A stretch of DNA of 64,000 bases, taken from the NCBI GenBank assembly GCA_033442325.1, contig JAWQFM010000025.1, positions 196,912-260,911 of the forward strand, read 5' to 3'. Shown here piece after piece: positions 16,942 to 57,501 of the stretch. Positions within the stretch are counted from its first letter, which is position 1, and each line of letters begins with the position of its first letter. The notes below the pieces were generated by a model, which was given only the letters and a program-made list of their open reading frames with translations, ran no database searches and was not told where the DNA came from. The DNA is from Salpingoeca rosetta. Taxonomy: Eukaryota; Protista; Choanoflagellata. The position numbers were made by a program, and so were the translations under genes.

Positions 16942-17282
16942 TGCAAGGTCCGCTATTCAAACTTTCAACTGCAACTTTTAGCGTCATGTCAAGGAATTAA
17001 GACTGAAACAACACAAGAAGGCGAGATGATACGTCAAGAGGTCAAGAGCAACCTAAAACTGAAAAAGTTCTGAAAGTAGGCAGAAGAGACCTTGCTCAAA
17101 GGTGGGTTTGGTGACGAAACAGAATGGATTACAAGAGGGACAAGGAGACAAGTGACAAAGAGACCTCTTTCAACAGAGCCAACACTAATTAAGTAATTAG
17201 ACAACAAGCAATCAAACATGGTACGTAACCCTGTCACACGACCATATCGCCAGAGTTTTGCCGCAATGCTTCGGTCACAAGG

Positions 17283-20200
17283 TCAAAGGATGTCTTCATC
17301 AACAGCTTCTGTCCGGCCGCTCCCACAAGCTTTCCAAGTCGAGCTTACTTGATTTGGAATCGGCGTCGTTGAGTGTTGAGCGATCCAATTCCGAACATCC
17401 ACGAGGTCCCAAACGTCGGCAGCTCGCAGATCTCGTGCTAATTCCTCCTGAGGCTGCTGCACAGTGAAGCATGTGGGCACGAGAGTTACGCGCTCTGTAT
17501 CGAAGGGAATATTGGCACGTGCAAGCAGATCTTGGACCTTGTCCTTGGAATCTTGAAGACTGGCGATAAAGTCGGCCTGCGAGCTATGCTCACCCCTCCA
17601 CTGATCTGCTCGATGCAGACATATGAGAACCGGCACAGAGGACTGAAGCAATGCAGCCCGAAGAACGTCGACCGTTGCATTTGCTCGAACCTTCGTCCCT
17701 TCTACAATCAGAATCAGCAGGTCCACTGCAGCAATGCCATCTTGAAAGACGTGGCTCACGACTGAGCCTGTGTCGTCAATGCCAGGAAAGTCAAGAAGAA
17801 CAATGTCACCCTCCACATGGGTTGATAGGGATGAATTTCTGTGATGATCGTGTGGCCCCGGATTGGTGTTCGCAGAAAAGATCTGTTTGAGCATGTAAGA
17901 CTTTCCCAGGTTCATTGCGCCAGCAGCGCCAATGTGAAGCCTTCCAGACAGCCCAAGCCGCAGCTCATGGATCATGCAATGGGCGCGGATCAGGTCCCAG
18001 CTTTCAATGGCGGTGTTCTTCTGCAAGTTGGACTTCAGGATGCGATGATCCCCTTTTTTGAGGGCTGATGGCAACTGAGCAAAGCTTTTGGACAAGAGCT
18101 CGCGCTTCTGAAGGCCGGAAATGGCGGCAGCTGTCTCAACACGAAGTGTCAAAAGGTGTTCGAGGCCAAGCAGATCGACGCACAATCCTTCATCTGAGAT
18201 GGGCTGGCCTTGTGTGTCTTTGAGCCCAGCCATCAAATGAGCGACTTCCCGAAGAGACGACACGGTGAACTGAGTCATAAACCATCTCCACACATCCCTC
18301 GACACGAAAAACAGGCTCGCGTGGACTTTGTTCCACCAATTGAGGGTTGTGCTTGCATATAGCTCTGAGAACGCATCTTGAACTTGAGCAGTTGTACGTT
18401 GCAGGTCATCCTGCTTGTGTATCTTCAGGTTGGTGCTCCACACGTCAAGAGATCGTCGTTCGAGTGACGCAGAAACAATTGCGAGGGCAGTTTGCGCACG
18501 CAGTAAGATTGACGCCACCGCAGCTGGGCCGCGCTGCCTCAATGAGTCTGCCATTTCCGATGGCATGAACTCGGAGCCGTCAGGGAAGAGATTGACTGTT
18601 GGCGCACCCACACGCACGCTTGAACTTTTACCTCGAGGCCCTCGTTCGATGACGTTGAGCGACGCGTCCTCCTTTTCCGCAAACTTGTACAACCTTGTCA
18701 ACACGGTTTTCTCCCATGGAGTGAACGAGGTCTTGTTGAGGGTGCGTCTTGTTTCAGCGCAAGTCATGGCAGTCTCCAGCAAGTCAACAAACGCCACAGC
18801 AACTTCATTTCGTCTTTCTGTACACTCTTTTGCAGATCTACAGCGACGAACACCGTTTTCAAGAAAAGGACGCGACACTTCGGGAAGGTCAAGAAAAGGG
18901 GCGAGCTGCGCTGTTTCAAAAATGCAGTCCAACGTGGAAACCGTATGCTTGACGGCGTGAGTATGCTGCGCATCAAGATGAGCGGCATTTTTTCGGTGAT
19001 GACACGACAAGATGAGGAGTGCGCGGACCAACGCAGCGTGGACAACTTCAGAACTCGTCAGTCTGTCAAACATAGGGTGCAGGCATTTGTTGCCTTCGCT
19101 CAATCTGTGATCTCTGATGTCTTGACGGCGAATGGTCACAATACATTCCTCATCCAAGACTGTCATGAGTGAAAATGCATACTCTTCCATGGCAGGCTCC
19201 AGAACAACTGAAGGAAACTCAAAGCGTGCACTGCTGATGCCACTGAGAAAAGCCACCTGAGCTTGGGCTGGCTTAGAAGTGCCGTCTGTTGTTCTTGTTG
19301 GCCTCATTTCACGTGCCATGAACAGTTTCTTTCCCTGTAGCTCAACTACAAGGCGAGTAGTTGAGTGGACGGCCAGATGAACGCGAATGTCTCTTGGGCA
19401 AAGAAAAGCTCCCTGGAACGGAAAATCGGGTGCGTGTTGGGGCTGGCATGAGACAGTTGGTTGCAACTTCAAACGCACTGCATACGTGCCCAAACTGTGG
19501 GCTGCCAGGAGTTGGCTGTGTGAAGGAAAGCCTCCTGAATCTGTACGATTTAGTTCTGGTGGTATCATTTCCTCGTCATAGAAATGGGGAGTGCCGTCAA
19601 CGTCATCTTCCTCGCGAAAGGACACGGGTGTGGGTAATATACAAACTACTGTGCGTGCCCTGAGTTTGTAGACGCTCCCAAACGGATAGTATTTCACACG
19701 AAATACTCGATGACCTATTTCACGCGCGCCGGCTTGCAGCACGCTTGATGTCACTCGGAGTGCAGCAGCGGCAAGTTTGGCCGGAAGTGGGCCGTGGTCT
19801 GCAAGAGTCGCAACAACCTGCAGTACAGATGTGCCTTTGGCAAGCTCCTTCAACAATTCTGCAAACTTATGCGCTGCGGAACTCAGGCCGTCAGCAATGC
19901 GTTGTTGGTAGAGCGTCATGACAAGTGGGACTATGTCCCCGTCATTGACAATGTGAAAGAAGATATCTCCCCAGCGAGCTTTGATGCACTTTGCAATTTG
20001 CTCATCGCCGACGAGAGGTGATGCAAATGTGACGCATCTGAGATTGGACACCAATTTGTCTCGTGACACGTGAACGAGGTCTTCCAGCAACAATATGCAA
20101 AGCGTTTGGGCCACGGCTCCTCCTTTGGAGTGGCCCGTCACCACAACCTTTTTATTCTCGTTTAGCACCTGCTGAACGATTTCCCGTGGGAACTCTTCGG

Positions 20201-20585
20201 CGCAAGAGAGAAAGCCTGAGTGTACCTTGCCCAAGGACTTATGCGTTTGAGTCAACCGTGCGTTTTTCCACCAATCTGTCGCGTCCGTGGTTCCCTTGAA
20301 GCCAATGTAGAACACGCTTTCGTCCGCATTTGCGCCGATTATCCACTGTTGATTCAAGCTTTCACTTGTCTGACCACGTTTTACGTGTCGAACCTTGTGT
20401 GGAAGACCATTTAGCTGTCGGAGAGTGTGGAGCGGGTTGTCAGAGTATGCACAGATGCTCATGGCCAAAGCACTATCCACGTCCACGTCGCACTGATCCA
20501 GTGGTTTGGGCTGACTGAGGTGGAGGCCGATTCTTTTGACTGCCTTCTGTCGCTCAGACAGTGGCTGTGACAACAGAGGGCCCAT
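17283..20585 (-). CDS. Class-3 lipase + C-terminal P-loop GTPase fusion, copy 1 (about 1100 aa, no coding introns)
   Basis: Lipase motifs FKGT, VHSGF, TGHSKGG, TFASPLVGD, NDGDIVP and AHSLGTY. GTPase motifs G1 GAMNLGKS, G3 DFPG and G4-like CLHRAD. First ATG at 20585. The upstream GTG at 20633 looks like a 5'UTR splice donor (CAA|GTGAGT). Confidence 0.85.
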   Translation of the reverse strand: MGPLLSQPLSERQKAVKRIGLHLSQPKPLDQCDVDVDSALAMSICAYSDNPLHTLRQLNGLPHKVRHVKRGQTSESLNQQWIIGANADESVFYIGFKGTTDATDWWKNARLTQTHKSLGKVHSGFLSCAEEFPREIVQQVLNENKKVVVTGHSKGGAVAQTLCILLLEDLVHVSRDKLVSNLRCVTFASPLVGDEQIAKCIKARWGDIFFHIVNDGDIVPLVMTLYQQRIADGLSSAAHKFAELLKELAKGTSVLQVVATLADHGPLPAKLAAAALRVTSSVLQAGAREIGHRVFRVKYYPFGSVYKLRARTVVCILPTPVSFREEDDVDGTPHFYDEEMIPPELNRTDSGGFPSHSQLLAAHSLGTYAVRLKLQPTVSCQPQHAPDFPFQGAFLCPRDIRVHLAVHSTTRLVVELQGKKLFMAREMRPTRTTDGTSKPAQAQVAFLSGISSARFEFPSVVLEPAMEEYAFSLMTVLDEECIVTIRRQDIRDHRLSEGNKCLHPMFDRLTSSEVVHAALVRALLILSCHHRKNAAHLDAQHTHAVKHTVSTLDCIFETAQLAPFLDLPEVSRPFLENGVRRCRSAKECTERRNEVAVAFVDLLETAMTCAETRRTLNKTSFTPWEKTVLTRLYKFAEKEDASLNVIERGPRGKSSSVRVGAPTVNLFPDGSEFMPSEMADSLRQRGPAAVASILLRAQTALAIVSASLERRSLDVWSTNLKIHKQDDLQRTTAQVQDAFSELYASTTLNWWNKVHASLFFVSRDVWRWFMTQFTVSSLREVAHLMAGLKDTQGQPISDEGLCVDLLGLEHLLTLRVETAAAISGLQKRELLSKSFAQLPSALKKGDHRILKSNLQKNTAIESWDLIRAHCMIHELRLGLSGRLHIGAAGAMNLGKSYMLKQIFSANTNPGPHDHHRNSSLSTHVEGDIVLLDFPGIDDTGSVVSHVFQDGIAAVDLLILIVEGTKVRANATVDVLRAALLQSSVPVLICLHRADQWRGEHSSQADFIASLQDSKDKVQDLLARANIPFDTERVTLVPTCFTVQQPQEELARDLRAADVWDLVDVRNWIAQHSTTPIPNQVSSTWKACGSGRTEAVDEDIL

Positions 20586-21067
20586 GGATGGTCTGTTGTG
20601 TTGTTGGAAGCCAAAGTTCGGAGAGGAACTCACTTGAACCGAAATTGGTCAAGACAGAAATGGTCAGAACATCACACACACACACACACAACCACACACA
20701 CAACCACACACGCACAACCACACAACACACACACGCACAACCAAGTTTTCACGCTCACGCACACAAGACGAACCCATGCGGGTCACATCAGCACATCTCG
20801 GCTAATTTTCTGTGTTTGACAAACGCTAGCAACCGGCCCGCCCATTCCCTGTTTGGGCGGAAAACCGGACATCGGACACCTGCATGTCCGGGTTGCATGT
20901 CCTGTGTGCTTCGGTTTCCTATTTGAGGTGCTTGTTTCGCCAATTTTCGATGCCTCTGGTGCTTTTCACGTGGAGCTCAAACTCAGGCAATGCTTCGGGT
21001 TGAGTTGTGCATTTTCTTTTCCTGAACTATCAGCGCGCATCATTGTGTCACTGCAAACTTACGGAGA

Positions 21068-22588
21068 ATGGTGAATGAGCGACTGCTGGAGCAAAATGGG
21101 GAAGAACAGGAGGGCTACTGCCGAACGTGTTGGCGTAACTGCACACGAGCTGTTTTTGCGTTTTGGCCTGCCGCCCTCTCTGTGCTTTCATTCGGAGCCC
21201 TAGTGGCAGCGGCGTACGGTGCATTGACACCGAAAGACTTTGACGTCACGCAACCGACCCGAGGAGGGCGGTATGAGCTGTTCGAAGGCCTCCTTCTGGG
21301 AGCAGCCGGAGCCGCAGCTCTGGCCGTGCTGCTGGTGATCTGCAACAAGGCCAAATTCGACAAGAAACAAAGCACATCCACGCGTCACACACGAGAATCA
21401 GACGATCAGGGGTGTTGTTGTCGTTGTGGGTATGCATGGTTGAAGCCCCTGTGTTGTGACTGTGCATGGTTGCCTTGCAACATTCACGACGACGACGACG
21501 ACGATGTGGAGTCCAGTGGCTCAGTCTTTGAAACAGACCCCATGCCAGACGACCCGTTTGAGTACGAAGAAAAGGACAAGGCCACCTTGCTCACCAAAGT
21601 GCTTGTGACTGCGTTTACGTGCGTCAAGGTGAAAACGGGGACACACAACTCCCTTCGGATTGCAAATCGAAAACTCGGACCAAGTGGCAAGTACTTGCTA
21701 GTGGGTTGTCTCGTGTTCATGTTTATGGGCATGGGGTGCGTCGTCGTCTATGAGCTTCAAGACCAAGTGTCGACTGCAGTCTGCTTGGAAGGCTATGACT
21801 GTTTCGTCTCGAACCCTAACCGAGTTAGTCACAACTCTGAGCCCGTCAACTGCACGGAAGTGCCATTTTTGAAAGCCCCATTCTACTTTGACTGTCGACG
21901 CCTGCACCCTTTTGAATTCAGCCGCGTGAGCTCGGTGCTCGGCTCTGCTTACGGCGCACTGCAGATCATTCTATTCGCGATCAACGCCTTCGTTGGGTTC
22001 CTGGACAAACAGCCACCGAAATCAAGGCGACAGAACGAACAGACAGGGTATTGTGCCCCCATCACGTCGCTTCCATGGAATTTCGATCGCGTGTTTTGGT
22101 GGATGCTCGGGGCGACCGTCGTGGGTTTAGTTTCACCAACAGTATATCTCGCCGTGTCGTTCTCACTGGATTCACTGAACGCCCCTGGGATTGGAACGCT
22201 GCTCCAGGTCGTTTTTATCATGGCAGGTCTTGTCATGCTTCCCCTCGCATTTTGTTGCAGCAGCCACCGAAACAATGTTGCTTTTGTGACCGTCAAGGAT
22301 GGCGTATTGATGGAGTACTTTGGCAGGTTGTCAAAGCAGGTTCAGGAGCAACAGTCACTCCACCCAGAGCGAGAAGAAGTGCCTGGCAAGCTGGACAGTC
22401 GCCCCCCAACCACCAAATTTGGTGGTCCCAAAGCCACAGAACAGTCTGTCCAACGCATGGCTTCACACGGCAATGACCCGACAACCGGAGATGATGACAC
22501 TGCTTCTGCCGTCACCCCTTTGGAAAAGGGCAAACCCCAAGTCCAGTACGGCACCAGATTAACTTCACATCCCGAGCAAGCTGTGTAA
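21068..22588 (+). CDS. Orphan multi-pass membrane protein (506 aa, about 6 TM, intronless)
   Basis: Six hydrophobic segments, a Cys cluster (CCCRC..CCDC) and a four-Cys loop with an NCT sequon between TM3 and TM4. Divergent from the lipase-GTPase gene. Confidence 0.75.
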   Translation: MVNERLLEQNGEEQEGYCRTCWRNCTRAVFAFWPAALSVLSFGALVAAAYGALTPKDFDVTQPTRGGRYELFEGLLLGAAGAAALAVLLVICNKAKFDKKQSTSTRHTRESDDQGCCCRCGYAWLKPLCCDCAWLPCNIHDDDDDDVESSGSVFETDPMPDDPFEYEEKDKATLLTKVLVTAFTCVKVKTGTHNSLRIANRKLGPSGKYLLVGCLVFMFMGMGCVVVYELQDQVSTAVCLEGYDCFVSNPNRVSHNSEPVNCTEVPFLKAPFYFDCRRLHPFEFSRVSSVLGSAYGALQIILFAINAFVGFLDKQPPKSRRQNEQTGYCAPITSLPWNFDRVFWWMLGATVVGLVSPTVYLAVSFSLDSLNAPGIGTLLQVVFIMAGLVMLPLAFCCSSHRNNVAFVTVKDGVLMEYFGRLSKQVQEQQSLHPEREEVPGKLDSRPPTTKFGGPKATEQSVQRMASHGNDPTTGDDDTASAVTPLEKGKPQVQYGTRLTSHPEQAV

Positions 22589-22937
22589 CACGGATATGCT
22601 GCTCTTGTGCAAGCTGGTGTCACGTTGACATGAGATGTGTCAAGTCTGGCAACGTGCCACCTTTCATTTTTTTTTTTTGTTTTTGTTTTGGAACCTTGAG
22701 TGTTTTCGGGGTGTTCGATTCTGTTTGGGCGGCACCCCCCCCCCCTTAAGCTGTCGGCCTCTCTGAGCAGAGAAATAAACACGTTGCAAGTTCGTACAAA
22801 CTGTGAAATGAGGGGGGGGGGGGGTACGCAGTGACTTGTGTGTCATTGCAGACGGGAGGATAGAAGGTGCCGTGTGTGTATGCGTGTGTGCGTATGTATG
22901 TGCCGAGCAACAGATGAAGCAGGCGGTGTGCTGCGCT

Positions 22938-23361
22938 TCACGACCATTCAATGGGCAGTTGGTGTCTGATATCGGTGAGCCTGTGGGTGTTTGTTGGCGT
23001 ATGCGCGCGTGAGAGCGTATGTGAGTGTGCGGCGTGAAGTTGTGGGTGTCATCCAACGAACATACGTTTTCACACAAACACACCCCAAAACAGCACACCA
23101 CCTCATGAGGATGTGTCCTGAGAGGGAGAAGAGGAACCCGCCGCCCTGCTGCAGCGAAAACATTTTCTTGATCTCCTGTCGTCATGTCATCATCGACAGC
23201 ACGAGGGTGGAGGGTGGAGGGGGTGAGAGAGAGTTGACGTTGACGTGGACAGAAGTAGGAGAAGGTCAAGAGGCGGTGCACGAGTTCAATTACACATGTG
23301 GCGGGCGCGGGCAGAGAGGAAGTGCGTGCTTGTGGGTATGAGCGTGAGCAAGAAAGGAAAG

Positions 23362-23430
<69 letters not shown>

Positions 23431-24555
23431 CACGCACAACCACAAATCTGACCTTGACGTGTCTCCTGTGCAATCGATCCCATATGCGGCGTGTGGCCGG
23501 ATCAAGCGGAGGCGTCACATCGTCCTCTTCATCAACACCAGCACAGCCATCAGCCACACCACCACCACCTTTGTTACCATCTTTCTGCTCTGTCGCAGTG
23601 CTTGTCCCACGGCTGCCACCGTTTATGGCACCTGCCTCTGTCCCAGCATGCGCCTCTCCCTTCTCACCGTCACCACCACCATTACCACCACCACGGCCAT
23701 TGGTGCTGCGGGTTTCCCCATTTGGAAGGCTGCGGCGCTGCAGTTTGGCCAATGTGTCCGCGGCCACGTGCGCCGACCGCCGCGGCTGCTCCTTCACCAC
23801 GACGCTCCGGTCGCTGCAGCACACGGACGCCGGCACAGCCGTTCGCGGCACCGCAGACTGCGCCTGGAGCAGTTGCAGTGAGGTGGCGGTTGTAGCGGGT
23901 GGGAGGCGGTGTTGTGAATGGGAGGTGGTGAGGTTGTTCTCTCCATTCGCGATTCTGAACATGACACAGGGCCATACACACACACGTACGTACATTGAGT
24001 TTCTTTGGAAGTGTTGATGGGTGGAGGGGGATGAGCTCCACATCTTCAATGCCAAACACCTGCGACGCAGACGGAATCAGGTGAGCGACAGCGTAAGCGC
24101 AGTCGCGTTGTGCAATCCGCTGCAGCCACCAACACACACACACACACACACAACACACACACACACACATACCCACCCAACCCCCCCCCAAACGCACCCC
24201 CAACATACACACCGTCAAAGGCTGCACGGTCGATGAGGTCCCATTGCCGGGTGATGCGGGAGATGCGCAGGCAGTGCTCGAGGTTTGCACTGGCAAAGAT
24301 GAGATGCTCCCCGTTGAGGTACACGTCCAGCCGCTGCGCCCCTCCGTGCGCCAATGGCACTCCTTTCAGGCCCGGCAGCGTGCCACCACCACCAACGCGA
24401 GACGTGCGTGCACTTGCGTTGTGCGCGGCAGCAAGCACCGCCTCCACCGCAGGCGCCGGTGGCCGTGCCGGTGGCTCACTACCACCGCGACGCTGCTGCT
24501 GTTCGTGCATCAGCTGCTGGTGGTGCTGTTTGTTGTGGTTGTTGGAGGCAGTCAT
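22938..24555 (-). CDS. Multi-exon hypothetical protein with possible doublecortin (DCX)-like motifs
   Basis: ATG at 24555. Exons splice to ...AQRLDVYLNGEH... and ...RRHVK|EIKKMFSLQQGGGFLFSLSGHILMR|LTDIRHQLPIEWS* (TGA at 22938-22940). Confidence 0.5.
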
Positions 24556-24694
24556 ATCTGGCTACTGTTTGTGGTGTTTGAAAGAAGTGACACATCATGG
24601 CAAATTTTCTACAATTGGTGCCACCAACAACAACTGCGACGATGAGGACTTTGTTGTCGCATCTGAGGATGAGGCAGCAGCCCTGGTGGCAGAG

Positions 24695-27360
24695 ATGGAG
24701 GATGAGGAGCGACGACACCTGCGCAAGAAGGCAAAGAGGCAAGGGGCGGCGCCTGCTGCTGCTGCTGCTGTGAAGAAGAGGACCCCGAAATACCTGCCAC
24801 CCGAGGAGCTGTGGATGGAGACATGCGCCATTTCCGGAAGCTGCGAGGCCGTGGAGCTGTGGAGCGCTGTCCGAGCGCGAGTGCCTCCTGGTGCTGCACC
24901 TGTACACCTTTCTCAAGCACGAGCACGAGATGGAGAGAGCAAGGAGGAAGGCGGCACGCACGGGTGGCAAGATGGCAACAAGAGACTTGCCGAAGGAAGT
25001 CGCCGTCATGCTCGGGTGTTCAGCGGCAACGGTGAAGCTGCTGCTGAGCAAGTGGAATCGAATGAAGCGGGAGGCTGGCAAGCGCCCCAACAGCCTCAAG
25101 ATCACCAACAACCGGGGCACAAGCGCAAAGCCACAGCGTGTCCCGTTCACGGAGCGCGTGACCAGGCTTGTCAGAGACTTTACCACACAAGCGCAGAGCA
25201 GCGGCCGGGTCATCAATGCCACGCAACTCACGAAGCACCTCATTGAGAGCGGGGTGCTGTCTGTGAAGGTGAACCCACTCACGAGCCAGCCGGAGCACAG
25301 AGACCTCCAGGCCGCAAGGAGGGCCACACAGCGGTTCTTGGTGCGATCCGGATACTTGCAAACTCAGGGTAGGGATGAGAGAAAGGCACGACCGACAACC
25401 CATCTCGACAAGCTCGCCGACTATCTCCACACCTTGTTCAAGAACCGCGAGCGGCCTCCCGAACAACAGCTGCGCGAGGTGCGTGTGTGTGTGTGTGTGT
25501 GTGTGCGCGTGTGTGTGGGAGGGGGGGGGTGTATGTGTGTGTGTGTCTTTGTGTGGGGGGGGGGTCTGTGTGTGTGTGTGTCTTTGTCTTTGTCTTTGTC
25601 TTTGTCTGTGTGTGTGTGTGTATGTGTGTGTGCACCGATGAATCTACTCGCCACCTCGCCACCTCGCCCCCTACTCGCTCCCTCGCCCTCCACGCGCCGC
25701 CTTTTGCCAGTCGTGTTACCCTAACATGTTACGTGTCACTTCATGACGTGCGTTACAGGTGTATCTGGACGAAGCGTACGTGCAAGCAGCAACCAACGAC
25801 AGCTCTGTTCGGCTGTCCACCCACGATCCCAGTCACCAATGGAACGCTGCTGAGCAGGAGAAGACCACGAAGACGAACGGCCCTCGCATGCGTGTTGTGC
25901 TGGCCATTCAGAACCGCGACCCACGCTCCGCCGACCCCTCGCAGCCGTGCACACCGCAGCAGCAGGCAGGCATTGTTGAGGGCACAGCATGGGTGGCTGA
26001 TCCTGATGAGGCGAAGCGACGGAAGGGAGAGGGCGGTGATCCGACGACGAAGAACAGGAAGAAGAGGAAGGCGAAGATGATGACGCTGATGACGATGATG
26101 CAAAAGATGAACGAGCGGAGTGATTCCCACACGACGGATGATAGCAAGGCCGTCGATACGACGAGCTTTCGCCAGTACTGGGTGTCCCAGCTGCTCCCGA
26201 GCCTGCACCAACCAAGCCTCATCATCATGGACCACGCAGCACACCGCAAGCTCTTCCCTCTGCACATCCCATACGTTGCGATCGCAAGCAAGGCGGACCT
26301 GCTCGGGTTCCTGACGGCGCCACCGACGGGCGCCGAGACAGTGGAGGAAGCTGTGGCGGAGATTGGGACCGGGACACCATTGACATCACAACCAGTGGCA
26401 GCAGCATCAACAAGTGGCGGTGATAGTAGTGGTGGTGAAGGTAACGATGATGGTGTTGGAGTTGCAGGCAGCAGTAGCAGCAGCGACAGCCGTGATGAGT
26501 AGTAGCCGGCTGTGGAGGCTGATGCCAGTAGCCATGAACGCAAACGGGCACACGTGCCGGGTGCTGGGCCGCACATGCATGTGGACACGTTGAGGCGCCT
26601 CGCGAGCAAATGGATCAGAGCACACTGCGTGCCGGAGCTTGTATCGCTGGCGCGGCAGCAAGACCACGAGGTTGCCTTCACGCCGCCACGCTACTCGGAC
26701 CTGCAGCCGATGGAGCTGGTGTGGGCTCTCCTCGGGGCACGCATGGCCCGGCAGGACGCATCTGGCACAGCCACGTCCGATGTGAGGCAGCGGTTATTGT
26801 GCAGCATCGGTGACATCTCCATGGCCTGCAGCGGAGGTGCCCACACCGTCGTACAGGCGCTCATTGACCACGCGGACAAGGTGGCGACACAACAACGCGC
26901 CGTTTTGTTTGAGAGTGGGACGTCTCGTCAGGCACCGCGCACCACCGTGTCATCGACGTTGTCCCCTTCACAGCCCGCCGCACACAGCGAAGCGCCCTCT
27001 CAACCACACGTTGCACCCGAAATACAGCCCGCACCAGTGCAACACCAGCAGCAACATGATGGTGGTCGTGGCGCATCCAGTGTGGAGGAGCTTCAACAAA
27101 GAGCCGATGACTTGCTCGACGTCATCCTCGGCCAATCAACGACGACCACCACGACCACCACCAATGCCACCACCAACATCACTACTACTGCTGCTGGCGT
27201 GGACACTTCAAGGGCCGGATTGGACGCGGTTGACGGCCTGGCGGAGGCTGCAGTGCAACTGCTGATGGAGGAGGACGTGCCACTGCAGGCGGAGGGGGAT
27301 GATGGTGATGATGATGATGACGGTGATGATGATGTTGTTGTTGGCAAGGATGAAGCTTAA
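24695..27360 (+). pseudogene. IS630/Tc1-mariner-type DDE transposase-derived gene with an intron and lesions
   Basis: LRE|VYLDEAY (intron 25479-25758), SLIIMDHAAHRK and AFTPPRYSDLQPMELVWA form a DDE triad context. There is an in-frame TAGTAG at 26500-26505 and a frame change near 24810-24860. No TIRs seen. Confidence 0.75.
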
Positions 27361-27808
27361 GCTTCTCCGGTGTTCATGTACTGCTGTGCGTATGTGTGTG
27401 TGTGTGTGTGTGTGTGTCTTGTCTTTGTGTGCCTGCACCTGCACGCTCTGATCTGTTCACCTGCTTCGCGGTATCTCGTTTTATGTTAGAGCAACATATG
27501 TTATCGAAACCGCGACATTGTAACCAGACCTGTGGGAGAAAACGAAACAAGGCACGCATTACCAAGCAAGTAACGCGGCGCAAAACAGCGCGAGGTGCAA
27601 CGAAAGCGACAGTGGGAAGCAACAAACAACGCCCAAACACAAGTTCCAGTGCGTTTGCGAAGAGTGGGGCCATGCAACCAACACACACACTCACACACAC
27701 GCCACACACACACACACACACCCAGCACACCCAGCACACACACACACACATACAACATAACATACACACACACACACACAACCTTCCCCTCCCAACACAA
27801 GCACACCA

Positions 27809-28219
27809 CTATCGTCGTCTGAGGTATGCGAGGATTTCCTTGTACTCTGGTTCCTCCACGGGAATCTCGCACGCCTTGAGCGTGGGGAACAGCCACTTCT
27901 TCAAGACGCCCTTTGGCGTGACGATGGCGCGTTCTTGGAGGTCCGAAGGCTTCACAACTGGACCAAGGTGCGGTGCAAAACACGTCAGGCATGTTGAGAA
28001 CGTCTGCTTGTCTCCAGACGCGCGTTGCACTTCGACAGTGTGGAGGCCAGAGTCCTTGTCAATGGTCACGTGTGGATTGGCGCCTCCTAGGGTGAGCCGT
28101 ATCTTCTCCCGCAGGATGTCGTGCAGCTCCTCCGGTGTACGCAACGGTGTCTGCACCATGACAACCCAGAACACAAAACAGACCCATGCAGTGAGAAACA
28201 TTTAGAGGATACTGACACG

Positions 28220-28266
<47 letters not shown>

Positions 28267-29982
28267 GCTCTCTGGCTAGCCTCACGCACACGCATGTGCG
28301 CGTGCATGCTTGTTGATGCGTGCTTGTGTGTGCGTGCGTGCACCCAGTCAATGACACGACTCGTACCAAAGGGCCAAAGTCCTCGAAATCATCATATCCG
28401 TCATCATCATCATCATCGTCGTCGTCCACTGGAGAGGTCACCTCGGCTGCAGCAGAGTCTGGTGACTGAGCACTTGGCAGTTCATCCTGCTGTTGCTGAA
28501 GGGGGCGCGGGAGCAGCAAGTCCGCCTTGTTCAAACACAGCAAAATGGGCACCTGCATCCATGTCACGGGTGGTGGGTGACGAAACATCAACGCAAGTCT
28601 CAAAGTGGCCTTGAGATAATTTTTGAGTTGCACACACACACCTCTTACAAAACCACACGTACACACACACACACACATTCACACACACACACACATTCAC
28701 ACACACACACACACACACATTCACAAAAATTATTTCGTACCCTCTCGTCGGAGAGTTGCCAGGAGTGCGTCCTTTGACACGTGCGGGTGTTTGGCTTGTC
28801 TGCCTCAACGACGAAGATGCAGGCATCGACGATTGAATAGTGCGCAGCAAACGCCTCTTCGACCTGTAATTGGATGGATATGCAAAACAACCGAGATGTC
28901 GAGATATGTGAGGAAGCCAGTACATACACCGCAACACGTCAAACGCTATTCGCCCCTTTCAGTAACAGCATCAACAACAACAGCAACAACAACATCAGCA
29001 ACAACAACAACATCATCAGCAGCAGTAACTACATGGCACGCCGCACCTTCTTGGTTGCATCGTCGCTGCCCGGGAAATCAACAAAGACAAAGTGCCGGGC
29101 GGCGGGCCACTTGTAGAACTCAATGCGCGTCGAGTTGACGGCGAAGTCGGGGTTGGACTTGAACTTGAGCCGAGAGAGGAACGTGCTCTGAAGTGAAGAA
29201 CGCATGCCACGCATGACGCCAGGGTGGAGTGAACAAACGAGTGTTTGCAGGAGTTGGCAGACGCATTGGAAGCGACTCCCATGCAAGCTCATGCACACAC
29301 GTGCACGTACACACAACACACACATACACGCACGCACGTACAAGCACGTACACACGCACACACACAAGCACGCACGCACGCATGTACACACACACACAAA
29401 CACACACACAAGCACACACCTTGCCCGTCTTGCTGGTTCCGACGACGCCAAACATAAACGTCCCTGCCATCAGTTCTCGCAGGCGGAAGATGAGCCAGAC
29501 GTCGCGGAGGAACAGCAACGCCCGCTTGCGCGCTGTGTCGTCGTCTTTCACATTGAACAGGGGATCGCCTTGCTTGAGTTTGGAGAAGTACCTGGCCCGG
29601 AATTCCGCAGACATCAGGGCGGCTGGGTCGATGCTGTGGCCCACAATCGCTTTCACCTTCTGTGCAATCCCCTTTTGCACAATGGCCTTCTCAGCAAAGT
29701 ACGTTGGGTCGACCGGCAGATCCTCGTTCTCATCCAGGCCAAGTAGTTGAAGCATCAGCTGTTTTGGTACCATAGCAGTGGGTGATTTGCGTGTTAGCGC
29801 GTACGTTTGTGCGTGTGTACGTTGGTGCGTGTGCCGTACATGTGTGTGAGCAGTGCTCTGGCATGCTGCGAATGAAATTGCATTGACGTCCGTGCATGCA
29901 CGTACACACTGTTTGTCGTGTACCCACCCCCCCCCCTTCTCCACACACATACACACACACACGCACACACACACGCACACAC

Positions 29983-30047
<65 letters not shown>

Positions 30048-31188
30048 TCAACACACAAACACACACACACACAAGTATGCCCACAACACCGCACCTGAAG
30101 ATTCTTCTGGTATTCCGCCTGATTCTCGTTTAACTTGTCCAGAACATCCCCAAGTACTCCCGCAAGTAGAAATGCAGCGATGCTGCCTGTCAGCATGGTG
30201 AGGCCGCCAACCTCTGCAAACAGGAAGTAGATGCCCGCAAATAACCCACCAAGCGAAAAGAAGGCAAGGCCAGCCATGATGATAGTGATGGCAGTGGTTA
30301 GCGCGACAATGCCAGGCCCCTTCTTAACAGCAATGTCTGGGTACCCCGTACGCGCGAGCACGTCCAGTGTTGACCACGAAACCGCTCGGAGCGCATCCTG
30401 TGCACACGTGCTCTTGTCATTCCGGAACCATTCTGAGGCGCGTTGGTACGGCAGCCGTTGTTCCTGCCTGTCTGCACATGCTCCTCCAGCGGGCTGATCA
30501 TACACCTGATGCTTGTGCACTTTCAGGTGCCATGAACCACGTTGAAAGTCGCACGAGGAACAATAACTGAGGTGAGAATTGACATCGATGAGTGCAACAA
30601 GAACAGCACAAAAGCGCCTTCAAAGTGGAGTTTGCTGCACAACCCTTTTGTTGCAATGAAATGCCCACACCAAACTCACGACAACACAACGCAACCACAC
30701 ACACACACACACACATCCTCACCTGCATTCCTCATTTTGCCCGCCAAAGCCTTCGCGTCTGCGGTGTCCACTCCAAATACATGCTTGCTTGCATCTACCA
30801 AGGCACCTGTATCTTGGTCCTCGCCCTCTTGCTCCGCCATGACTTGAATGGCCTCCTGCAGTGGCTTTGTGCGCTCGTCCTGATACTTGAGTTCTTCGAT
30901 CGAAATCGTGGAGCCAACGACTTCACGCAGGGCCGCTGCAGGCTCGTCCTTGCCCCTCTCCTGCCACCGCTTCGCAGCCGGTGTTACATCGCCCTCCTCC
31001 AACTGCGCAAGGATCTGTAGCACCTCTTCTTGTTGCGCCTTGTTATCTGAGAACAGGGTGAGCAGGAAAGCCTGCAGAAGTAACATGTGATGGCAGAAGC
31101 AACATGCGAGTATAGGTGATGGAAGATACACCTGTAAGCGTTTGAGGTTTGGTTCGCCCCACAGATCAGTGCAGCACACATAAATGCA

Positions 31189-31257
<69 letters not shown>

Positions 31258-33458
31258 CACACACACGCACACAAACCGCAGCATACTTGGTTGATGACGT
31301 CGTGACGTGAGAGCTTTGCGGCCTGCGCCAGCTTGCCAAACAAGGGCAACTTTGAGAGTTGAGTGACATCGACACGCACTGTGCTCGCAGGCGCTGTGAA
31401 TACGGTGTAAAGTCGCACATCAAACACGGCCTTTGCCTGTTGTGTCGTGCATGAAATCGTCACCTCCAGCCGCTTCCCACCGTCAAGAAGCACAGGCGTG
31501 AACTTGCGCTTGTGGCCATCAAGGGAGCTTGTCACGTGCGTGACAAACGCAAACCCGTCGCCAGTGAATGTGAGATGGTGCTGTTGGCTGTTGGCTGTCA
31601 ATGTCGTGCTCGAGTGGTCTGACTGGAACATCAACTTCCGAGGGGCGGAGAAGTCGGGATGCTGGGTGAATGTTGGGATTCGGGGTGTTTGCTGCGGATA
31701 CCATGCATGCCGATTCAAGTGGTGGCCCTGGCAATAGTGGTCCAGAAGATGGTTTTTGAGGAGCTCGGCCTTCAGCTGCGGAAGTGTGTGTGTCTTGAAC
31801 AAAGCGGCATGAATCTCATTTGGGTTGTTGTATGGATTCCATTTTGAGTCCTCAAAAATCAGGTACGTGCCAAAGGGCGAATAGTCACTCTGCATGCTTT
31901 GGCTCGCAAGGAAGCCAAGGTACCTTGCAAGTGTCATCCAAAGGCTCCCCTTCGCGTTTTGCGAAATGACAGATGTAAGGCTGCCGAAGAATGAGCTGCG
32001 GCTCTCTGGCTGGCTGAAGGCCTTGTTGAGAACTTGCGCGACAAGTGATGACCTCTTAGAAGCGTCTGCTTGGGAGCTGAATGCACGCGTGAGCATGGTC
32101 AGCACGCGTGGGACAATGTCGTTGCTGTACACGTGGAACCGGCAGTTGCTGTGAGCCACGCCAGCACCACCAATCTCCCGCTCAAACTGCTGCGCGAAAG
32201 CCCTGTCTCCGACAAGAGGTGCGCCAAACGTCACCACGTGCACGTTTCTGCGGTCGTCGTGCTGGTGGCACTCAAGCAGCACGCGCAACGCCACCAGCTG
32301 TGCCAGCGCACCGCCGAGCGAGTGGCCGCAGAACACCAAGCGGTACTTCTTCTTGTCACCTGGACTCCCGTGGAGCAACCGCACAAATGGCTCGACGGGG
32401 ATCTTCTCAGCCACGCGAAGAAAGCCCAGATGCACGCGGCCCTCGATGGCCTCGCTCATTGGAGGGACGGCAAACGCCGTCATGTCCGTCATGGCGTGTT
32501 GCAGCGTCTGCGTGCTCTGGAAGCAGATGTACACGGGGGTCGTGTCTTCGCCGTTGAGCGGATCGTCGCTGCCAAACGCGACGATGAAGTGGTGGCTTTC
32601 AGCGGCATTGCGTGTGAAGGCAATCTCCTTCAGCTGGTGGTATCCGTCGCGCTTGTCGAGGTTTTGGTTGAAATGCCGTTGAATTGCCACTTCTTGATTG
32701 CTGCCCCCGTTGCTCAGGCATTGCGCCAACAGGAGACACATGTCGGTGTCTCGACGGCGTATGACATCTGGAGGTAGCCTGGGCGCGTGTTGGAACACAA
32801 GCGTCGCAGGATGGCCTCGGACTAACACACAGGTGTACAAGCAGCGCCATTGTGAGCGCGTCAAGCAGGCTGAACTTGGGCTGGTGGTAGGGAGGTGTCG
32901 GTGACGGTTCATAACGTGGGTTGTTGGGGGGAGAGGCAGCACGATGAGGCGTCAGTAAGCATGAGATGAGCAACAATTGACTTACGCCTCTGCGCAAAGG
33001 TTTGGTCCATGAGACGGGCGGGAGTCACTGGTTGTGGGATCACCAAAGATGTCACAGTGTCATCTCCAACCGGAGGTACCTCTGTTGTCTCCACAACGTC
33101 GGCTGCAACAACTTCTGCGAGGACATGGCCGCACCGCACGCCTTCTTCAAACAGCCTTGAGCCTACCAAAGCAAGTGCCCAAGAGGAGTGCGTACGTGAG
33201 CAGAGAGAAGTGTGTACGTGAGTGCGCGGACACAAGCCAAAAGACACGACACAAGGGACGAAGGGATACAAACAGACATGGGTCGGTGGAGGCGTTGGCG
33301 TAAACCTGCACACATTCAGCAAGCAGTGGTGTACCTTGATGACAGAATGAGACGACATGTCGCTCGCCGTCCCGCATCAGGCCAAACGTCGACACTGCCT
33401 GCTGCAGGTCGTTCACTGTCACTGTCACCTGCGTCACAGTCGCTCTGGTGGTGGACAT
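27809..33458 (-). CDS. Class-3 lipase + TM hairpin + P-loop GTPase fusion, copy 2 (10 exons, about 1230 aa)
   Basis: Exons 33335-33458, 32986-33162, 31287-32821, 30723-31071, 30095-30471, 29420-29758, 29047-29187, 28741-28863, 28367-28552 and 27809-28150 sum to 3693 nt in frame. Lipase motifs VHLGF, CGHSLGG, TFGAPLVGD, NDIVP and NHLLDHY. GTPase motifs G1 GTSKTGK|S, G3 DFPG and G4 NKAD. Confidence 0.82.
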
Positions 33459-33555
33459 GACGCTGTTTGTTTGTTTGGGTGTGAAGTTCGGAAAATTGGT
33501 TTTATTTTCCGTGAATAATCGGCAATCTGCGACAGTGCGCACACCAAACGCGACG

Positions 33556-36339
<2,784 letters not shown>

Positions 36340-36895: not shown

Positions 36896-39213
36896 TCACC
36901 CCGCAGAGGCTGGGGACGTGTGTGCATGCAGTGTTGAGCAGAGGAAGCGCAGGATCAAGTTGCGACGCGTTGAAGAGGATTGGTGGGCTACTTGAGCGGA
37001 GATGAAACGGAGCAGGGGGTTGCGCTGTACTGGGGAGTGTTGCTGCTGTTGTCCAGAGGGAGTTGGGGTAGACTGGTGTTGTGAAACTTGACGAATGAAT
37101 TCCTGCAGACGCAGTGCAAGTAAATTCTGCTGCCCATCTTTGGTGTGTGGGTGGTCTGGGCCAAGCGTGTCCATCAAGATATCGACAGCTCGTTGCATCA
37201 ACTGTTTTGCGCGGGCATAGTCGCACTTGCTGTAGTACACCCCACCCAGGTTGTTGTATGTGGTTGCTGTGTCTGGATGCTTCTCCCCCAACGTGTCCAG
37301 GCGGATCTGCAGGCTCTTCTGGTAGTAGTGGATGGCGCGGTCATACTCCCCCTTGCTGTTGTACACCCCGCCCAGGTTGCCGTATGTGGTTGCTGTGGAC
37401 GGATGCTTCTCCCCCAACGTGTCCAGTGTAATGTTCAAATCCTTCTGGTAGTACTCCAGAGCACGGTCATACTCCCCCTTGCTCCTGTACACCTGGCCCA
37501 GGTTGTTGTATGTGGTTGCTGTGTCTGGGTGCTTCTCCCCCAACGTGTCCAGCTTGATCTGCAGGCTCTTCTCATAGTAGTGGATGGCACGGTCATACTC
37601 CCCCTTGCTGTTGTACACCTGACCCAGGTTGTTGTATGTGGTTGCTGTGTCTGGGTGTTTCTCCCCCAACGTGTCCAGCTTGATCTGCAGGCTCTTCTGG
37701 TAGTAGTGGGTGGCGAGGTCATAGTCGCCCTTGCTCTTGTACACCTGACCCAGGTTGCCGTATGTGGTTGCCGTGTGTGGATGCTTCTCCCCCAACGTGT
37801 CCAGCTGTATCTGCAGGCACTTCTCATAGTAGTGGATGGCACGGTCATAGTCGCCCTTGCTCCTGTACACCTGGCCCAGGTTGCCACATGTGGTTGCTGT
37901 GGACGGATGCTTCTCCCCCAACGTGTCCAGCTGTATCTGCAGGCACTTCTCGAAGTACGCCAGAGCGCGGTCATAGTCGCCCTTGCTCTCATACACTTGA
38001 CCCAGGTTGTTGTATGTGCCTGCCGTGTGTGGATGCTTCTCCCCCAACGTGTCCAGCTGTATCTGCAGGCACTTCTCATAGTAGTGGATGGCGCGGTCAT
38101 AGTCGCCCTTGCTGTAGTACACCTGACCCAGGTTGTTGTGTATGGTTGCTGTGGATGGATGCTTCTCCCCCCACGTGTCGAGGTAGATCTGCAGGCTCTG
38201 TTGGCAGTACTCCAGAGCACGGTCATACTCACCCATGCTGCAGTGCACCCCGCCCAGGTTGTTGTACGTTCTTGCTGTCTCTGCGTGTTTCTCCCCCAAG
38301 GTGTCCAGCTGTATCTGCAGGCACTTGTCATAATAGTGAATGGCACGGTCATAGTCGCACTTGCTGCAGTACACGTGACCCAGGTTGTTGTATGTGGTTG
38401 CCGTGTGTGGATGCTTCTCCTCCAACGTGTCCAGCTGTATCTGCAGGCACTTCTCATAGTAGTGGATGGCGCGGTCATAGTCGCCCTTGTTGCAGTACAC
38501 CTGACCCAGGCTGCTGTATGTGATTGCTGTGGACGGATGCTTCTCCCCCAACGTGTCCAGCGTAATCTTAAAACCCTTCTGGTAGTACTCCAGAGCACGG
38601 TCATACTCACCCATGCTGTAGTACACACCGCCCAGGTTGCCGTATGTGGTTGCTGTGGACGGATGCTTCTCCCCCAACGTGTTCAGCTCGATATCCAGGC
38701 CTCGTTGAAGAAACTGCTCCGCTCTTTCATGCTCTCCAAAGTCAAGCATGACCAGTCCAACTCTGTTGCACATGCGTGCAAACTCGGCCGTGCCGTCTTC
38801 GCCTCCCATCCCCATCTCCTCCAAAAATGACTTTGCCATCATCAAACACCAGGCGCGCATCCGTCCTTTCACAGCTCTGTTCACTTCAGGGAAGCCCACA
38901 GTGTCCTCAATCGCCTTGAAGATCATCTCCTTGTCTGCTCGCACACTTGCGCTTGCTTTCCCTGCTTGCACCTCCACCAGCATGTTGGTGATTGCCTTGT
39001 GATCTTCAAGCAAAGCTTCCCTCAGCTTCGTGCGCTGGTGCTGTGGCAGCCTAATCTCCAATCCAACATCGCTTTCTTGGCTGATGGCGCAGAAGATCTC
39101 CCACAGACACCACGCGCGTGTCAGTGGGACGGGCTTGTTCCACGGCGTCAGCACCAGCAGCACCTTGCCAATGGATGCAATGGCGCTCTTGAACGGGGCC
39201 CCAATCCTGCCAT

Positions 39214-39276
<63 letters not shown>

Positions 39277-39801
39277 AGGTGTCGAGACGAAACGCACACA
39301 CTGGTGAAGCAACCTGACACACACACACACACACACACACACAACTCACTGTTCTGGCGACAGGCCCATGCGCGATTCTGTGTGCTGGTTGTTGCAGAAG
39401 AGGTCAAACCAGAAGAACGTCTCTTGCTTGCTGTGCTTGGTTCCATCTTCATCCTTGTGTTTCTCCTCCTCCTCCTCGTCGTACTCCAGCATGGTGGTGA
39501 GGACATCGGAGATCTTGTACTTCCAGGCGTGCGACACAAACACGGTGGCTGGTCCCACTTCCTCCGGCTTGGTTCTGCGCAGCAGGTCGATGTACGAACA
39601 CTTCCATTCCTTCGTGCGGTGGATCACGGGCTTGACACTCGCATCGTACGTCGTCACCTCCTCGTAGTTGTCGGGGTGATAATCCTTGATCTGCGACATG
39701 AACCGCTTGATGGCAGAGGTGCTCACGCCATCCGTGCAGATGGGCGCTGCTGCTGTTGTGGTGGTTGTGGTGGTTGCAGTTGTTGGCTTTGGCGTGGACA
39801 T
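36896..39801 (-). CDS. TIR/HET-like N-terminal domain + 13 TPR repeats (kinesin-light-chain-type 42-aa TPR)
   Basis: Exons 39350-39801 and 36896-39206 (intron CA|GTGAGT...GCAG|G). N-terminal motifs FVSHAWKY, FWFDLFCNNQH and PLTRAWCLWE. Repeat unit LGEKHP.TA.TY.NLG.VY.SKG.YDRA..YY.K.L.I.LDT. Confidence 0.9.
37180..38760 (-). repeat. 126-bp coding tandem repeat array (TPR units)
   Basis: 12 highly similar 126-nt units plus one degenerate unit. Confidence 0.92.
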
Positions 39802-56300: not shown

Positions 56301-57468
56301 AGCCGTATCCATATGCGATGAACCCTGCCGCAATGATGGCTGCAATGGCAGCCATGCATGGGGGCGGTGGTATGATGCAACCATTTCCAGGCATGATGCA
56401 ATCCTCCATCGCCCCGCCCACAGCAACCACAACAGCAACAGCAGCGTCGTCGGCAACAGCGCCGCTACTGGCGGGAATGCCGAACGCGCTTGTGCGCATG
56501 CCCGATGGAACCATGTCAGTCGTTGACCCACGCATCTACGCGTACCAGGCAATGCTGCTTCAACAACACCACCAACAACAGCCGTGGCAGCCGTGGCAGC
56601 CGTGGCAGCCGTGGCAGCAGTGGCAACGCGGCCAGGGAAATGACCAAACCAAGACGCAGAAGGGTGGTGATGGCGGCAAGCTGACCAGGGGCCGAAAGAA
56701 GCGTGCCAACACCAGCAAACATAGTGCCAGTGACGACGATGACGATGGTGGTGACGACACGGGAGCAGGCTCTGACGCGAGCACAGATGATGACAGCGAT
56801 GGCAGTGGTGGCAGCAAAGGTGAGCGGCGTCGCAGTCATCACGACCGTCGTCGCCATCGTCGTCATCATCATGGCCGCGGCCGCCAGCATCGTCGTGGTC
56901 GCCAGGATCACCGCCGTCAAGCCACGAACGGCACCGCATCCACATCACCATCCACATCGTCGTCGTCATCGTCGTCATCACGTATCATGTCCCGCGCTGC
57001 GTCGCCAGAACGCACAGCACTGGCACACGTGGCGGCGTCCTCGTCCTCGTCGTCGTCGTCGGGGGCGGCATCAGTGACGTCCCTCTCCTCCTCCTCCTCC
57101 TCCTCCTCGTCGTCGTCGTCGTCTTCCGCCGTGACGTCGCGCTCCTCATCACCGTCACCGTCATCAGCATCATCATCGTCGTCGTCGTCACCAGTGTCTC
57201 CATCGTCGCTTGCATCCTCGCTTCGCAGCGGTAAGCGGAAGCGGCGGCAGAAGCAGATAAAGCCGAGCAGACGCAACAGAACAATGAGAGGCACACGCAG
57301 CAGCAATGATGATACCAACAGCAGCGGCAGCAACAGCGGCAGCGGCAGCAGCAATGATGACAGCAACAGTGACAGTGACAGTGACATTGACACGTCGCGT
57401 CCATCATCGTCGCCAGCCCCAACACGCACGCGGTCGCGAGCAAAGAAGCCGCAGCAGCCGCGCAAACG

Positions 57469-57501
<33 letters not shown>

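Follow-up and report, generated by a model that had tools for sequence, protein, structure and literature searches.

Two genes on the minus strand of a 64,000-nucleotide stretch of the choanoflagellate Salpingoeca rosetta (contig JAWQFM010000025.1 of assembly GCA_033442325.1, positions 196,912 to 260,911; the whole stretch is called the window here) are each predicted to encode a class-3 lipase and a C-terminal P-loop GTPase in one polypeptide. We propose that both genes, called copy 1 and copy 2, encode GTPase-coupled membrane lipases from a family of 0.9-1.3 thousand-residue proteins, and we consider the chances of this reading to be about even. Such proteins would combine known kinds, with a large, putatively membrane-associated GTPase fused to a lipase effector. 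Judged from sequence searches, the family is a widespread eukaryotic one that is multi-copy and patchy in distribution, and its database entries are only hypothetical proteins. If the proposal is true, the covalent link between a lipase and a switch GTPase would offer a simple and testable example of membrane lipid hydrolysis gated by a nucleotide. Family members occur in several eukaryotic supergroups, including early-branching animals and a choanoflagellate. Choanoflagellates are the closest living relatives of animals, and S. rosetta is genetically tractable.

Gene models and the two enzyme domains

The copy 1 open reading frame (ORF) was an exact match to S. rosetta PTSG_09137 (P0001, 1090 residues, scaffold GL832983.1), and the window has the same orientation as the scaffold record. 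Both the lipase and the GTPase of copy 1 are encoded within this single ORF. Unspliced, it reaches a stop at 17283; the NCBI model removes a short 3' intron, which moves its end to 17034, and the difference between the two readings is confined to the final 11-21 residues. The original prediction, made from the sequence alone, had placed the pair at 17283-33458. The upper boundary stood, as 33458 is the first base of the copy 2 start codon, but the lower boundary is the unspliced copy 1 stop and was replaced by the NCBI end.

17034..20585, minus strand: copy 1 gene (PTSG_09137), 1090 residues, exons 20585-17349 and 17069-17034, from the exact protein match to P0001 and the NCBI gene range
27809..33458, minus strand: copy 2 gene, 1246 residues, 10 exons, from the GT-AG model, the NCBI length and the PTSG_02605 exon structure
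33458-33335, 33162-32986, 32821-31287, 31071-30723 and 30519-30095, minus strand: copy 2 exons 1-5
29758-29420, 29187-29047, 28863-28741, 28552-28367 and 28150-27809, minus strand: copy 2 exons 6-10

The copy 2 model was built by hand, joining open frames at GT-AG splice sites, with the ATG at 33458 and the stop codon at 27811-27809. Every intron in it is GT-AG, and its total of 3741 nt, or 1246 codons, equals the NCBI product length exactly. In the NCBI annotation, copy 2 is one gene whose product has 1246 residues, with Lipase_3, MMR_HSR1 and GTP_EFTU as the precomputed Pfam families. A third S. rosetta paralog on a different scaffold, PTSG_02605 (P0020, 1243 residues), is ~90% identical to copy 2, and its annotated protein mapped exactly to its own locus with ten exons in the copy 2 phases and of near-equal lengths. 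Because the model matches both the NCBI length and this exon structure, the lipase and GTPase of copy 2 are predicted to be one polypeptide. Exon 6 ends with GGC AAG at 29420, followed by gt, and exon 7 begins with AGC at 29187. The intron between them (29419-29188) splits the P-loop GTSKTGKS between its last K and S, as the original prediction had noticed, and occupies the identical position in PTSG_02605. Runs X1-X3 contained 0.65-0.69 of the words sampled from 28000-33500, where the exonic share is 0.68, which is an indirect sign of splicing or expression. Long (TG)n/(CA)n microsatellites are also found in nearly all copy 2 introns, such as at ~31250-31190, 30060-29950, 28720-28650 and 28270-28220. 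The ORF track is misleading at copy 2 because of these intron repeats (28220-31250).

The following lipase features were located.

19461..20498, minus strand: copy 1 class-3 lipase domain, residues ~30-375, Pfam Lipase_3 E 2.5e-22
20135-20118, minus strand: copy 1 GHSKGG (Ser153), residues 151-156
19946-19926, minus strand: copy 1 NDGDIVP (Asp217), residues 214-220
19505-19482, minus strand: copy 1 AAHSLGTY (His363), residues 361-368
31734..32591, minus strand: copy 2 class-3 lipase core, inside exon 3, Pfam Lipase_3 E 9.7e-23
32327-32310, minus strand: copy 2 GHSLGG (Ser268), residues 266-271
32126-32106, minus strand: copy 2 SNDIVPR, residues 333-339
31757-31734, minus strand: copy 2 KNHLLDHY (catalytic His), residues 456-463

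Against Pfam PF01764 (Lipase_3), copy 1 scored 79.7 bits and copy 2 scored 81.1 bits, with a curated cut-off of 22. The catalytic Ser, Asp and His are all present in both copies within the motifs first quoted for them, which upholds the claim of a complete class-3 lipase in each gene. In a 61-member family alignment, the Ser was kept in 58/61 sequences, the Asp in 58/61 and the His in 61/61. From this conserved set, both lipases are apparently active. Among PDB sequences, those closest to the lipase domain of copy 1 were plant EDS1 (1.6e-11) and Rhizomucor lipase (1e-9), and since both match, the domain is assigned as a generic class-3 lipase. Atg15, the diacylglycerol lipases and plant DAD1-type phospholipase A1 share this Pfam Lipase_3 fold and its catalytic residues, the Ser of GxSxG, the Asp and the His. 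These enzymes are membrane-anchored and hydrolyse membrane glycerolipids. They differ from the S. rosetta proteins in having no GTPase and in using N-terminal transmembrane segments as anchors.

Another possible explanation is that the lipase domain has no catalytic role and acts as a scaffold or a small-molecule sensor, as in EDS1, PAD4 and SAG101, and that the whole protein is a signalling GTPase. The rank of EDS1 as the nearest solved sequence to the copy 1 lipase would fit this, and in the EDS1 family, too, a lipase-like domain is paired with a large partner domain made of helices. P0003, P0005 and P0007 (874-898 residues), the closest environmental relatives of copy 1 and members of its clade, have lost the first half of the lipase, with its Ser and Asp segments. 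However, catalysis is dispensable in the EDS1 family, which also has no GTPase, whereas the triad is conserved in the S. rosetta family, both window genes included. Fungal triacylglycerol lipases match nearly as well as EDS1, and no EDS1-family entry was found beyond the lipase among the Foldseek and VIA-align matches. We therefore regard a non-catalytic lipase domain as highly improbable. The opposite loss is seen in P0052 (1038 residues), which has kept the lipase and lost the P-loop.

The GTPase features are as follows.

17361..17963, minus strand: copy 1 GTPase domain, residues ~875-1075, from MMR_HSR1, AlphaFold and motifs
Within 17930-17898, minus strand: copy 1 G1, GAMNLGKS
Within 17795-17772, minus strand: copy 1 G3, DFPG
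Within 17621-17598, minus strand: copy 1 G4, HRAD (deviant)
17480-17376, minus strand: copy 1 terminal TCF...W motif
27887..29449, minus strand: copy 2 GTPase domain, exons 6-10, with the intron-split P-loop
Within 29082-29059, minus strand: copy 2 G3, DFPG
Within 28537-28514, minus strand: copy 2 G4, NKAD
27988-27887, minus strand: copy 2 terminal TCF...W motif

No aligned member departs from the P-loop Lys or the G3 Asp (61/61), and both window genes have GKS and DFPG, with the Lys at residue 895 in copy 1 and 982 in copy 2. Copy 2 has NKAD at G4, and its Thr lies one position off the aligned G2 column. The isolated copy 1 domain matched MMR_HSR1 with 24.0 bits (cut-off 21.9). Across the family, MMR_HSR1 matched 44/57 G domains and Dynamin_N matched 22/57 at E<0.01, copy 1 not being among the latter. 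Searched against the PDB, the family profile matched EngA/Der (4.8e-27), Era, EngB, eIF5B/IF2, Irgb6 (2.9e-11) and Irgb10 (3.7e-9). An AlphaFold model of copy 1 residues 805-1090 had a predicted local distance difference test score (pLDDT) of 87.7 and a predicted template modelling score of 0.82, and all 500 Foldseek matches listed for it had E<=0.001. The best structural matches were tied at Z 16-17.5 and comprised YsxC/EngB (17.5), Irga6 (17.1), eIF2-gamma, IF2 and mitofusin. The alignment of mitofusin extended into the preceding helices (Z ~16.6, 235-244 residues, root-mean-square deviation ~6). These results support the earlier claims of a C-terminal P-loop GTPase in both genes and of a GTPase fold, here matched at Z ~17. 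The domain is predicted to be a genuine TRAFAC GTPase of the Era/EngB/dynamin-like type. The terminal TCF...W motif that the copies were said to share is present in both, and 70% of the family retains its W.

Among the predicted structures of the ESM Atlas, those nearest to the G domain of copy 1 with its preceding helices were bacterial GTPases with MMR_HSR1 and Dynamin_N, several of them with DUF697, at template modelling scores of 0.55-0.60 over ~200-216 residues. Many of these are membrane proteins by virtue of DUF697. They differ in having 240-615 residues and no lipase domain, and the likeness is one of shared fold. The IRG/p47 proteins (Irga6, Irgb6 and Irgb10) have a membrane-acting Era-like G domain, a DxPG G3 and flanking helices in common with the S. 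rosetta proteins, and aligned at Z 16.5-17.1 over ~176 residues. In contrast to the S. rosetta proteins, they are ~400 residues long and have no enzymatic effector domain, and their match to the copy 1 G domain was no better than that of EngB, IF2 or eIF2-gamma. Of the profiles specific to IRG, GBP and GIMAP proteins, IIGP matched 2/57 G domains (E<0.01), neither of them from a window gene, and GBP and AIG1 were absent among the 25 families listed. A specific kinship with these immune GTPases was thus not supported.

The middle region

Between the two enzymes, three features were placed.

19128..19385, minus strand: copy 1 Ig-like seven-strand beta-sandwich, residues ~401-486, from the AlphaFold model of residues 372-870, block pLDDT 64-87
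17976..19073, minus strand: copy 1 helical middle region, residues ~505-870, from the AlphaFold model
30140..30319, minus strand: copy 2 hydrophobic Gly/Ala-rich block, 60 residues (796-855), Kyte-Doolittle means up to 2.19

Copy 1 residues 372-870 were modelled with AlphaFold from 60 aligned sequences, with a mean pLDDT of 66. A beta-rich and then helical middle had been described for both genes, and the seven-strand sandwich followed by helices agrees with this for copy 1, the only copy modelled. When compared with the PDB by Foldseek and VIA-align, the sandwich gave only generic Ig-like and E-set matches (Z ~6.5), and the helical region gave matches resembling four-helix bundles (Z ~7.5 at best). 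Pfam returned nothing meaningful for the copy 1 middle region or for individual copy 2 exons, and no recurring Pfam family was found in the middle region across the family. Two candidates for copy 1 were considered and are unsupported in this moderate-confidence model: an EDS1-type EP domain in residues 372-870, for which no EDS1-family entry was among the matches, and a dynamin stalk, for which there was no stalk match.

The copy 2 hydrophobic block is predicted to form a membrane hairpin or two to three spans. In copy 2 and many relatives it lies 60-130 residues ahead of the G domain. An equivalent block was found in ~27/61 relatives, ending 40-130 residues ahead of the GTPase envelope, and in 49/61 family members at least part of the middle region, wherever placed, is hydrophobic. 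Hydropathy analysis of copy 1 showed one weakly hydrophobic segment only (residues 688-708), at a relative position matching that of the copy 2 block. One family member, P0059, carries a phosphoinositide-binding PX domain between the lipase and the GTPase (residues ~630-690, E 5.6e-9), and the JGI name of another, P0129, is 'predicted membrane protein'. The hydrophobic blocks and the PX domain make membrane association plausible. Neither window protein has a hydrophobic N-terminal leader, as judged by eye. N-myristoylation of copy 1, which begins MGPLLS, was also considered and was dropped, as a Pro following the Gly is disfavoured for this modification.

Membrane-anchored members of the dynamin superfamily (mitofusin, BDLP, atlastin and LeoA) also have a large GTPase, bundles of helices and a hydrophobic hairpin in the membrane, and mitofusin-1 aligned over residues 1-272 of the copy 1 G-domain model. 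However, the hydrophobic block lies after the G domain in the dynamin superfamily and before it in the proteins described here. The G domain of this family is also small (~200 residues), and the moderate-confidence model of the middle region gave no match to a dynamin-type stalk. We know of no dynamin-superfamily member that carries a lipase.

Family, selection and function

An exhaustive search returned 1752 proteins at E<1e-3. Local profile iteration showed that ~70 of the best 150 cluster representatives have the lipase and this G domain together, in proteins of roughly 780-1370 residues. The original remark that Lipase_3 and P-loop domains are combined in other eukaryotes was therefore correct. 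Word-index searches with P0001 and P0052 returned only the queries themselves, and the family was recovered by the exhaustive search alone. Its members include the chrysophytes Chromulina nebulosa and Dinobryon divergens, the amoebozoans Cavostelium apophysatum and Acytostelium subglobosum, the animals Hydra vulgaris and Convolutriloba macropyga (an acoel), and the chytrid fungus Physocladia obscura. In a protein atlas, both window proteins led to plant Lipase_3 clusters of ~1020 residues (scores 0.82-0.85), which serves as a lead only. AT3G07400, a possible plant candidate, appears only in gene lists. Literature searches for the architecture, the family and the locus tags found no paper and no characterised member, in agreement with the original statement that no function had been characterised.

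A single-copy enzyme does not describe this family, as S. rosetta carries three of its genes or more, and a eukaryotic-looking environmental contig of 434 kb carries three in tandem (L003:10001-23305; 1311, 1456 and 1135 residues). Several uninterrupted members sit on long environmental contigs of eukaryotic appearance. The genes for P0009, P0012, P0019 and P0025, each without interruption on its contig, also speak for one polypeptide. P0019 (903 residues, a single ORF at L002:10001-12712) lies on a dense 65.8-kb contig of mostly unmatched ORFs with a MutS and a weak CHAT match, and this contig may be a giant virus. When searched against the PADLOC defence models, P0019 weakly matched LeoBC (1.5e-7) and LeoA (1.6e-4). 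The family tree departs from the species tree, Chromulina having members in two distant clades (FastTree), and the G domain has a mean column identity of 13% across paralogs.

The two window genes had been called paralogs, and this stood insofar as their lipases and GTPases align. The relationship is distant, however. Their lipase domains are 33% identical (tblastn 1.8e-12), their G domains align collinearly by phmmer (positions 829-967 against 825-963), and pairwise alignment is limited to these two parts. A FastTree analysis of 758 well-occupied columns grouped copy 1 with proteins of the chrysophytes Chromulina and Dinobryon (support 0.998) and placed copy 2 and PTSG_02605 with other environmental sequences. 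On this evidence, copy 1 and copy 2 are deep paralogs in different subfamilies.

Selection was examined for the recent pair, copy 2 and PTSG_02605. The Nei-Gojobori ratio of nonsynonymous to synonymous substitution (dN/dS) was 0.32 overall, with dS 0.21, and by region it was 0.29 in the lipase, 0.23 in the G domain, 0.50 in the hydrophobic block and 0.54 at the N-terminus. Because of the ratio of 0.32, both genes are judged to be maintained by purifying selection. There was no gene-wide signal of diversifying selection between them by this method. An out-of-frame stretch in copy 2 exon 8 was masked for the calculation.

28741..28785, minus strand: copy 2 exon 8 out-of-frame stretch, 15 codons (residues 1057-1071), from the nucleotide alignment with PTSG_02605 exon 8

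Compared with PTSG_02605, exon 8 of copy 2 has three one-base homopolymer insertions (CC to CCC, AA to AAA and G to GG), and the frame is regained at the exon end. These insertions are either an assembly error or a compensated frameshift. The former is weakly hinted at because 0/3 of the 31-mers sampled from 28741-28810 were listed in any run, which is weak evidence.

We propose the following mechanism for a GTPase-coupled membrane lipase. The hydrophobic block would be a hairpin that keeps both enzymes at the cytosolic face of a membrane; this face is favoured because no hydrophobic N-terminal leader was seen and because the GTPase needs cytosolic GTP. Binding of GTP would lead to dimerisation of the G domains, as in Era-like, dynamin-like and IRG GTPases, and dimerisation would set where and when the lipase gains access to membrane glycerolipids. 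Copy 1 could be a soluble or differently regulated variant, since it has no strong anchor and its G2 and G4 are deviant. As to the site of action, we lean toward endosomal, phagosomal or other conflict-related membranes over core lipid metabolism. This leaning is due to the lineage-specific expansion, tandem clusters and patchy phylogeny of the family, the PX domain in one relative, and the genes rich in tetratricopeptide repeats (TPR) and encoding a leucine-rich repeat (LRR) kinase that neighbour the pair in the window.

Several observations weigh against this proposal. The membrane prediction comes from crude Kyte-Doolittle hydropathy, the model of the middle region is only moderately confident (pLDDT 66), and the sole weakly hydrophobic segment of copy 1 sits inside a long helix in that model. 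Copy 1 is the only one of the 61 members with an Asn (Asn917) in place of the switch-I Thr, and its G4 is HRAD instead of NKxD, with the guanine-specifying Asp retained. Owing to these two changes, the GTPase cycle of copy 1 may be altered. In copy 2 as assembled, the 15 out-of-frame residues fall between G3 and G4. As to conflict, neither P0001 nor P0020 matched a PADLOC defence model, and the expansion and patchiness are also compatible with non-conflict roles.

The hairpin and the purifying selection would be just as compatible with a role at lipid droplets or the endoplasmic reticulum. The proteins could thus be housekeeping enzymes of lipid metabolism or organelles, with a hairpin-anchored lipase on these membranes and a GTPase used for tethering or membrane shaping, similar to atlastin or mitofusin. 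Hairpin-type hydrophobic blocks typify lipid-droplet and ER-shaping proteins, and such blocks are present in copy 2 and its relatives. The alignment of mitofusin with the G-domain model plus its preceding helices, the dN/dS of the recent pair and the lack of PADLOC matches for P0001 and P0020 are also in favour of this explanation. However, core metabolic enzymes are usually conserved and near single-copy, whereas this family is multi-copy, its tree is unlike the species tree and its paralogs are very divergent in the G domain. Its named members are also few and scattered, with Hydra and an acoel among animals and one chytrid among fungi. We consider a housekeeping role rather doubtful. If the role were metabolic, the fusion would represent an unrecognised mode of regulating a membrane or droplet lipase.

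Alternatively, as first proposed, the proteins could be dedicated cell-autonomous immune effectors, in which GTP-dependent oligomerisation on a prey membrane or one that contains a pathogen would set free a phospholipase to destroy this membrane or the cell itself. This would agree with the expansions, tandem clusters and patchy distribution, with the TPR_12/TPR_10-rich protein and the LRR tyrosine kinase near the pair, and with the possible giant-virus contig and Leo matches of P0019. IRG proteins are also among the tied best structural matches. However, these supporting points are all circumstantial. No gene-wide positive selection was seen between copy 2 and PTSG_02605, the signature specific to IRG, GBP or GIMAP proteins was not found, and the large ORFs at 992-2824 and 3891-5456, both on the plus strand, had no Pfam match at E<0.001. 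We find it unlikely that the proteins are dedicated immune effectors. If the role were defensive, an enzymatic-effector branch would be added to the large immune GTPases, with a bearing on cell-autonomous immunity before animals.

A broader form of the defence idea is that the family is an ancient pan-eukaryotic cell-autonomous effector. This hairpin-anchored phospholipase would be armed by GTP-dependent oligomerisation of its G domain at a membrane, be it that of an engulfed bacterium, of a vacuole with a parasite or of a giant-virus factory. Its present-day carriers would be choanoflagellates, cnidarians, acoels, chytrids, amoebae and chrysophytes, with possible capture by giant viruses. We consider this improbable. 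If it were true, one polypeptide would join what animals do with IRG and GBP GTPases plus separate lipases.

Neighbouring genes

The TPR-rich neighbour is an 817-residue ORF at 36896-39349 on the minus strand, which consists almost wholly of TPR_12/TPR_10 repeats (E 6e-222). Repeats of this type are common in sensors resembling nucleotide-binding leucine-rich repeat receptors. The second neighbour, at 42097-45570 on the minus strand, is a 1157-residue ORF in which LRR_8 repeats (E 2e-57) are combined with a tyrosine/serine-threonine kinase domain (E 2.6e-18), and from these domains it is predicted to be an LRR receptor kinase.

Two other ORFs stood out in the window. Adjoining copy 2 and divergent from it in orientation is a 784-residue ORF at 33448-35802 on the plus strand, with GDVTER tandem repeats, very long poly-Gln runs and no Pfam family. 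Further along, an uninterrupted ORF of 1887 residues at 53279-58942 on the plus strand had no Pfam match at E<0.001 and lies in a region with a GC content of 0.57-0.62 and a strongly negative GC skew.

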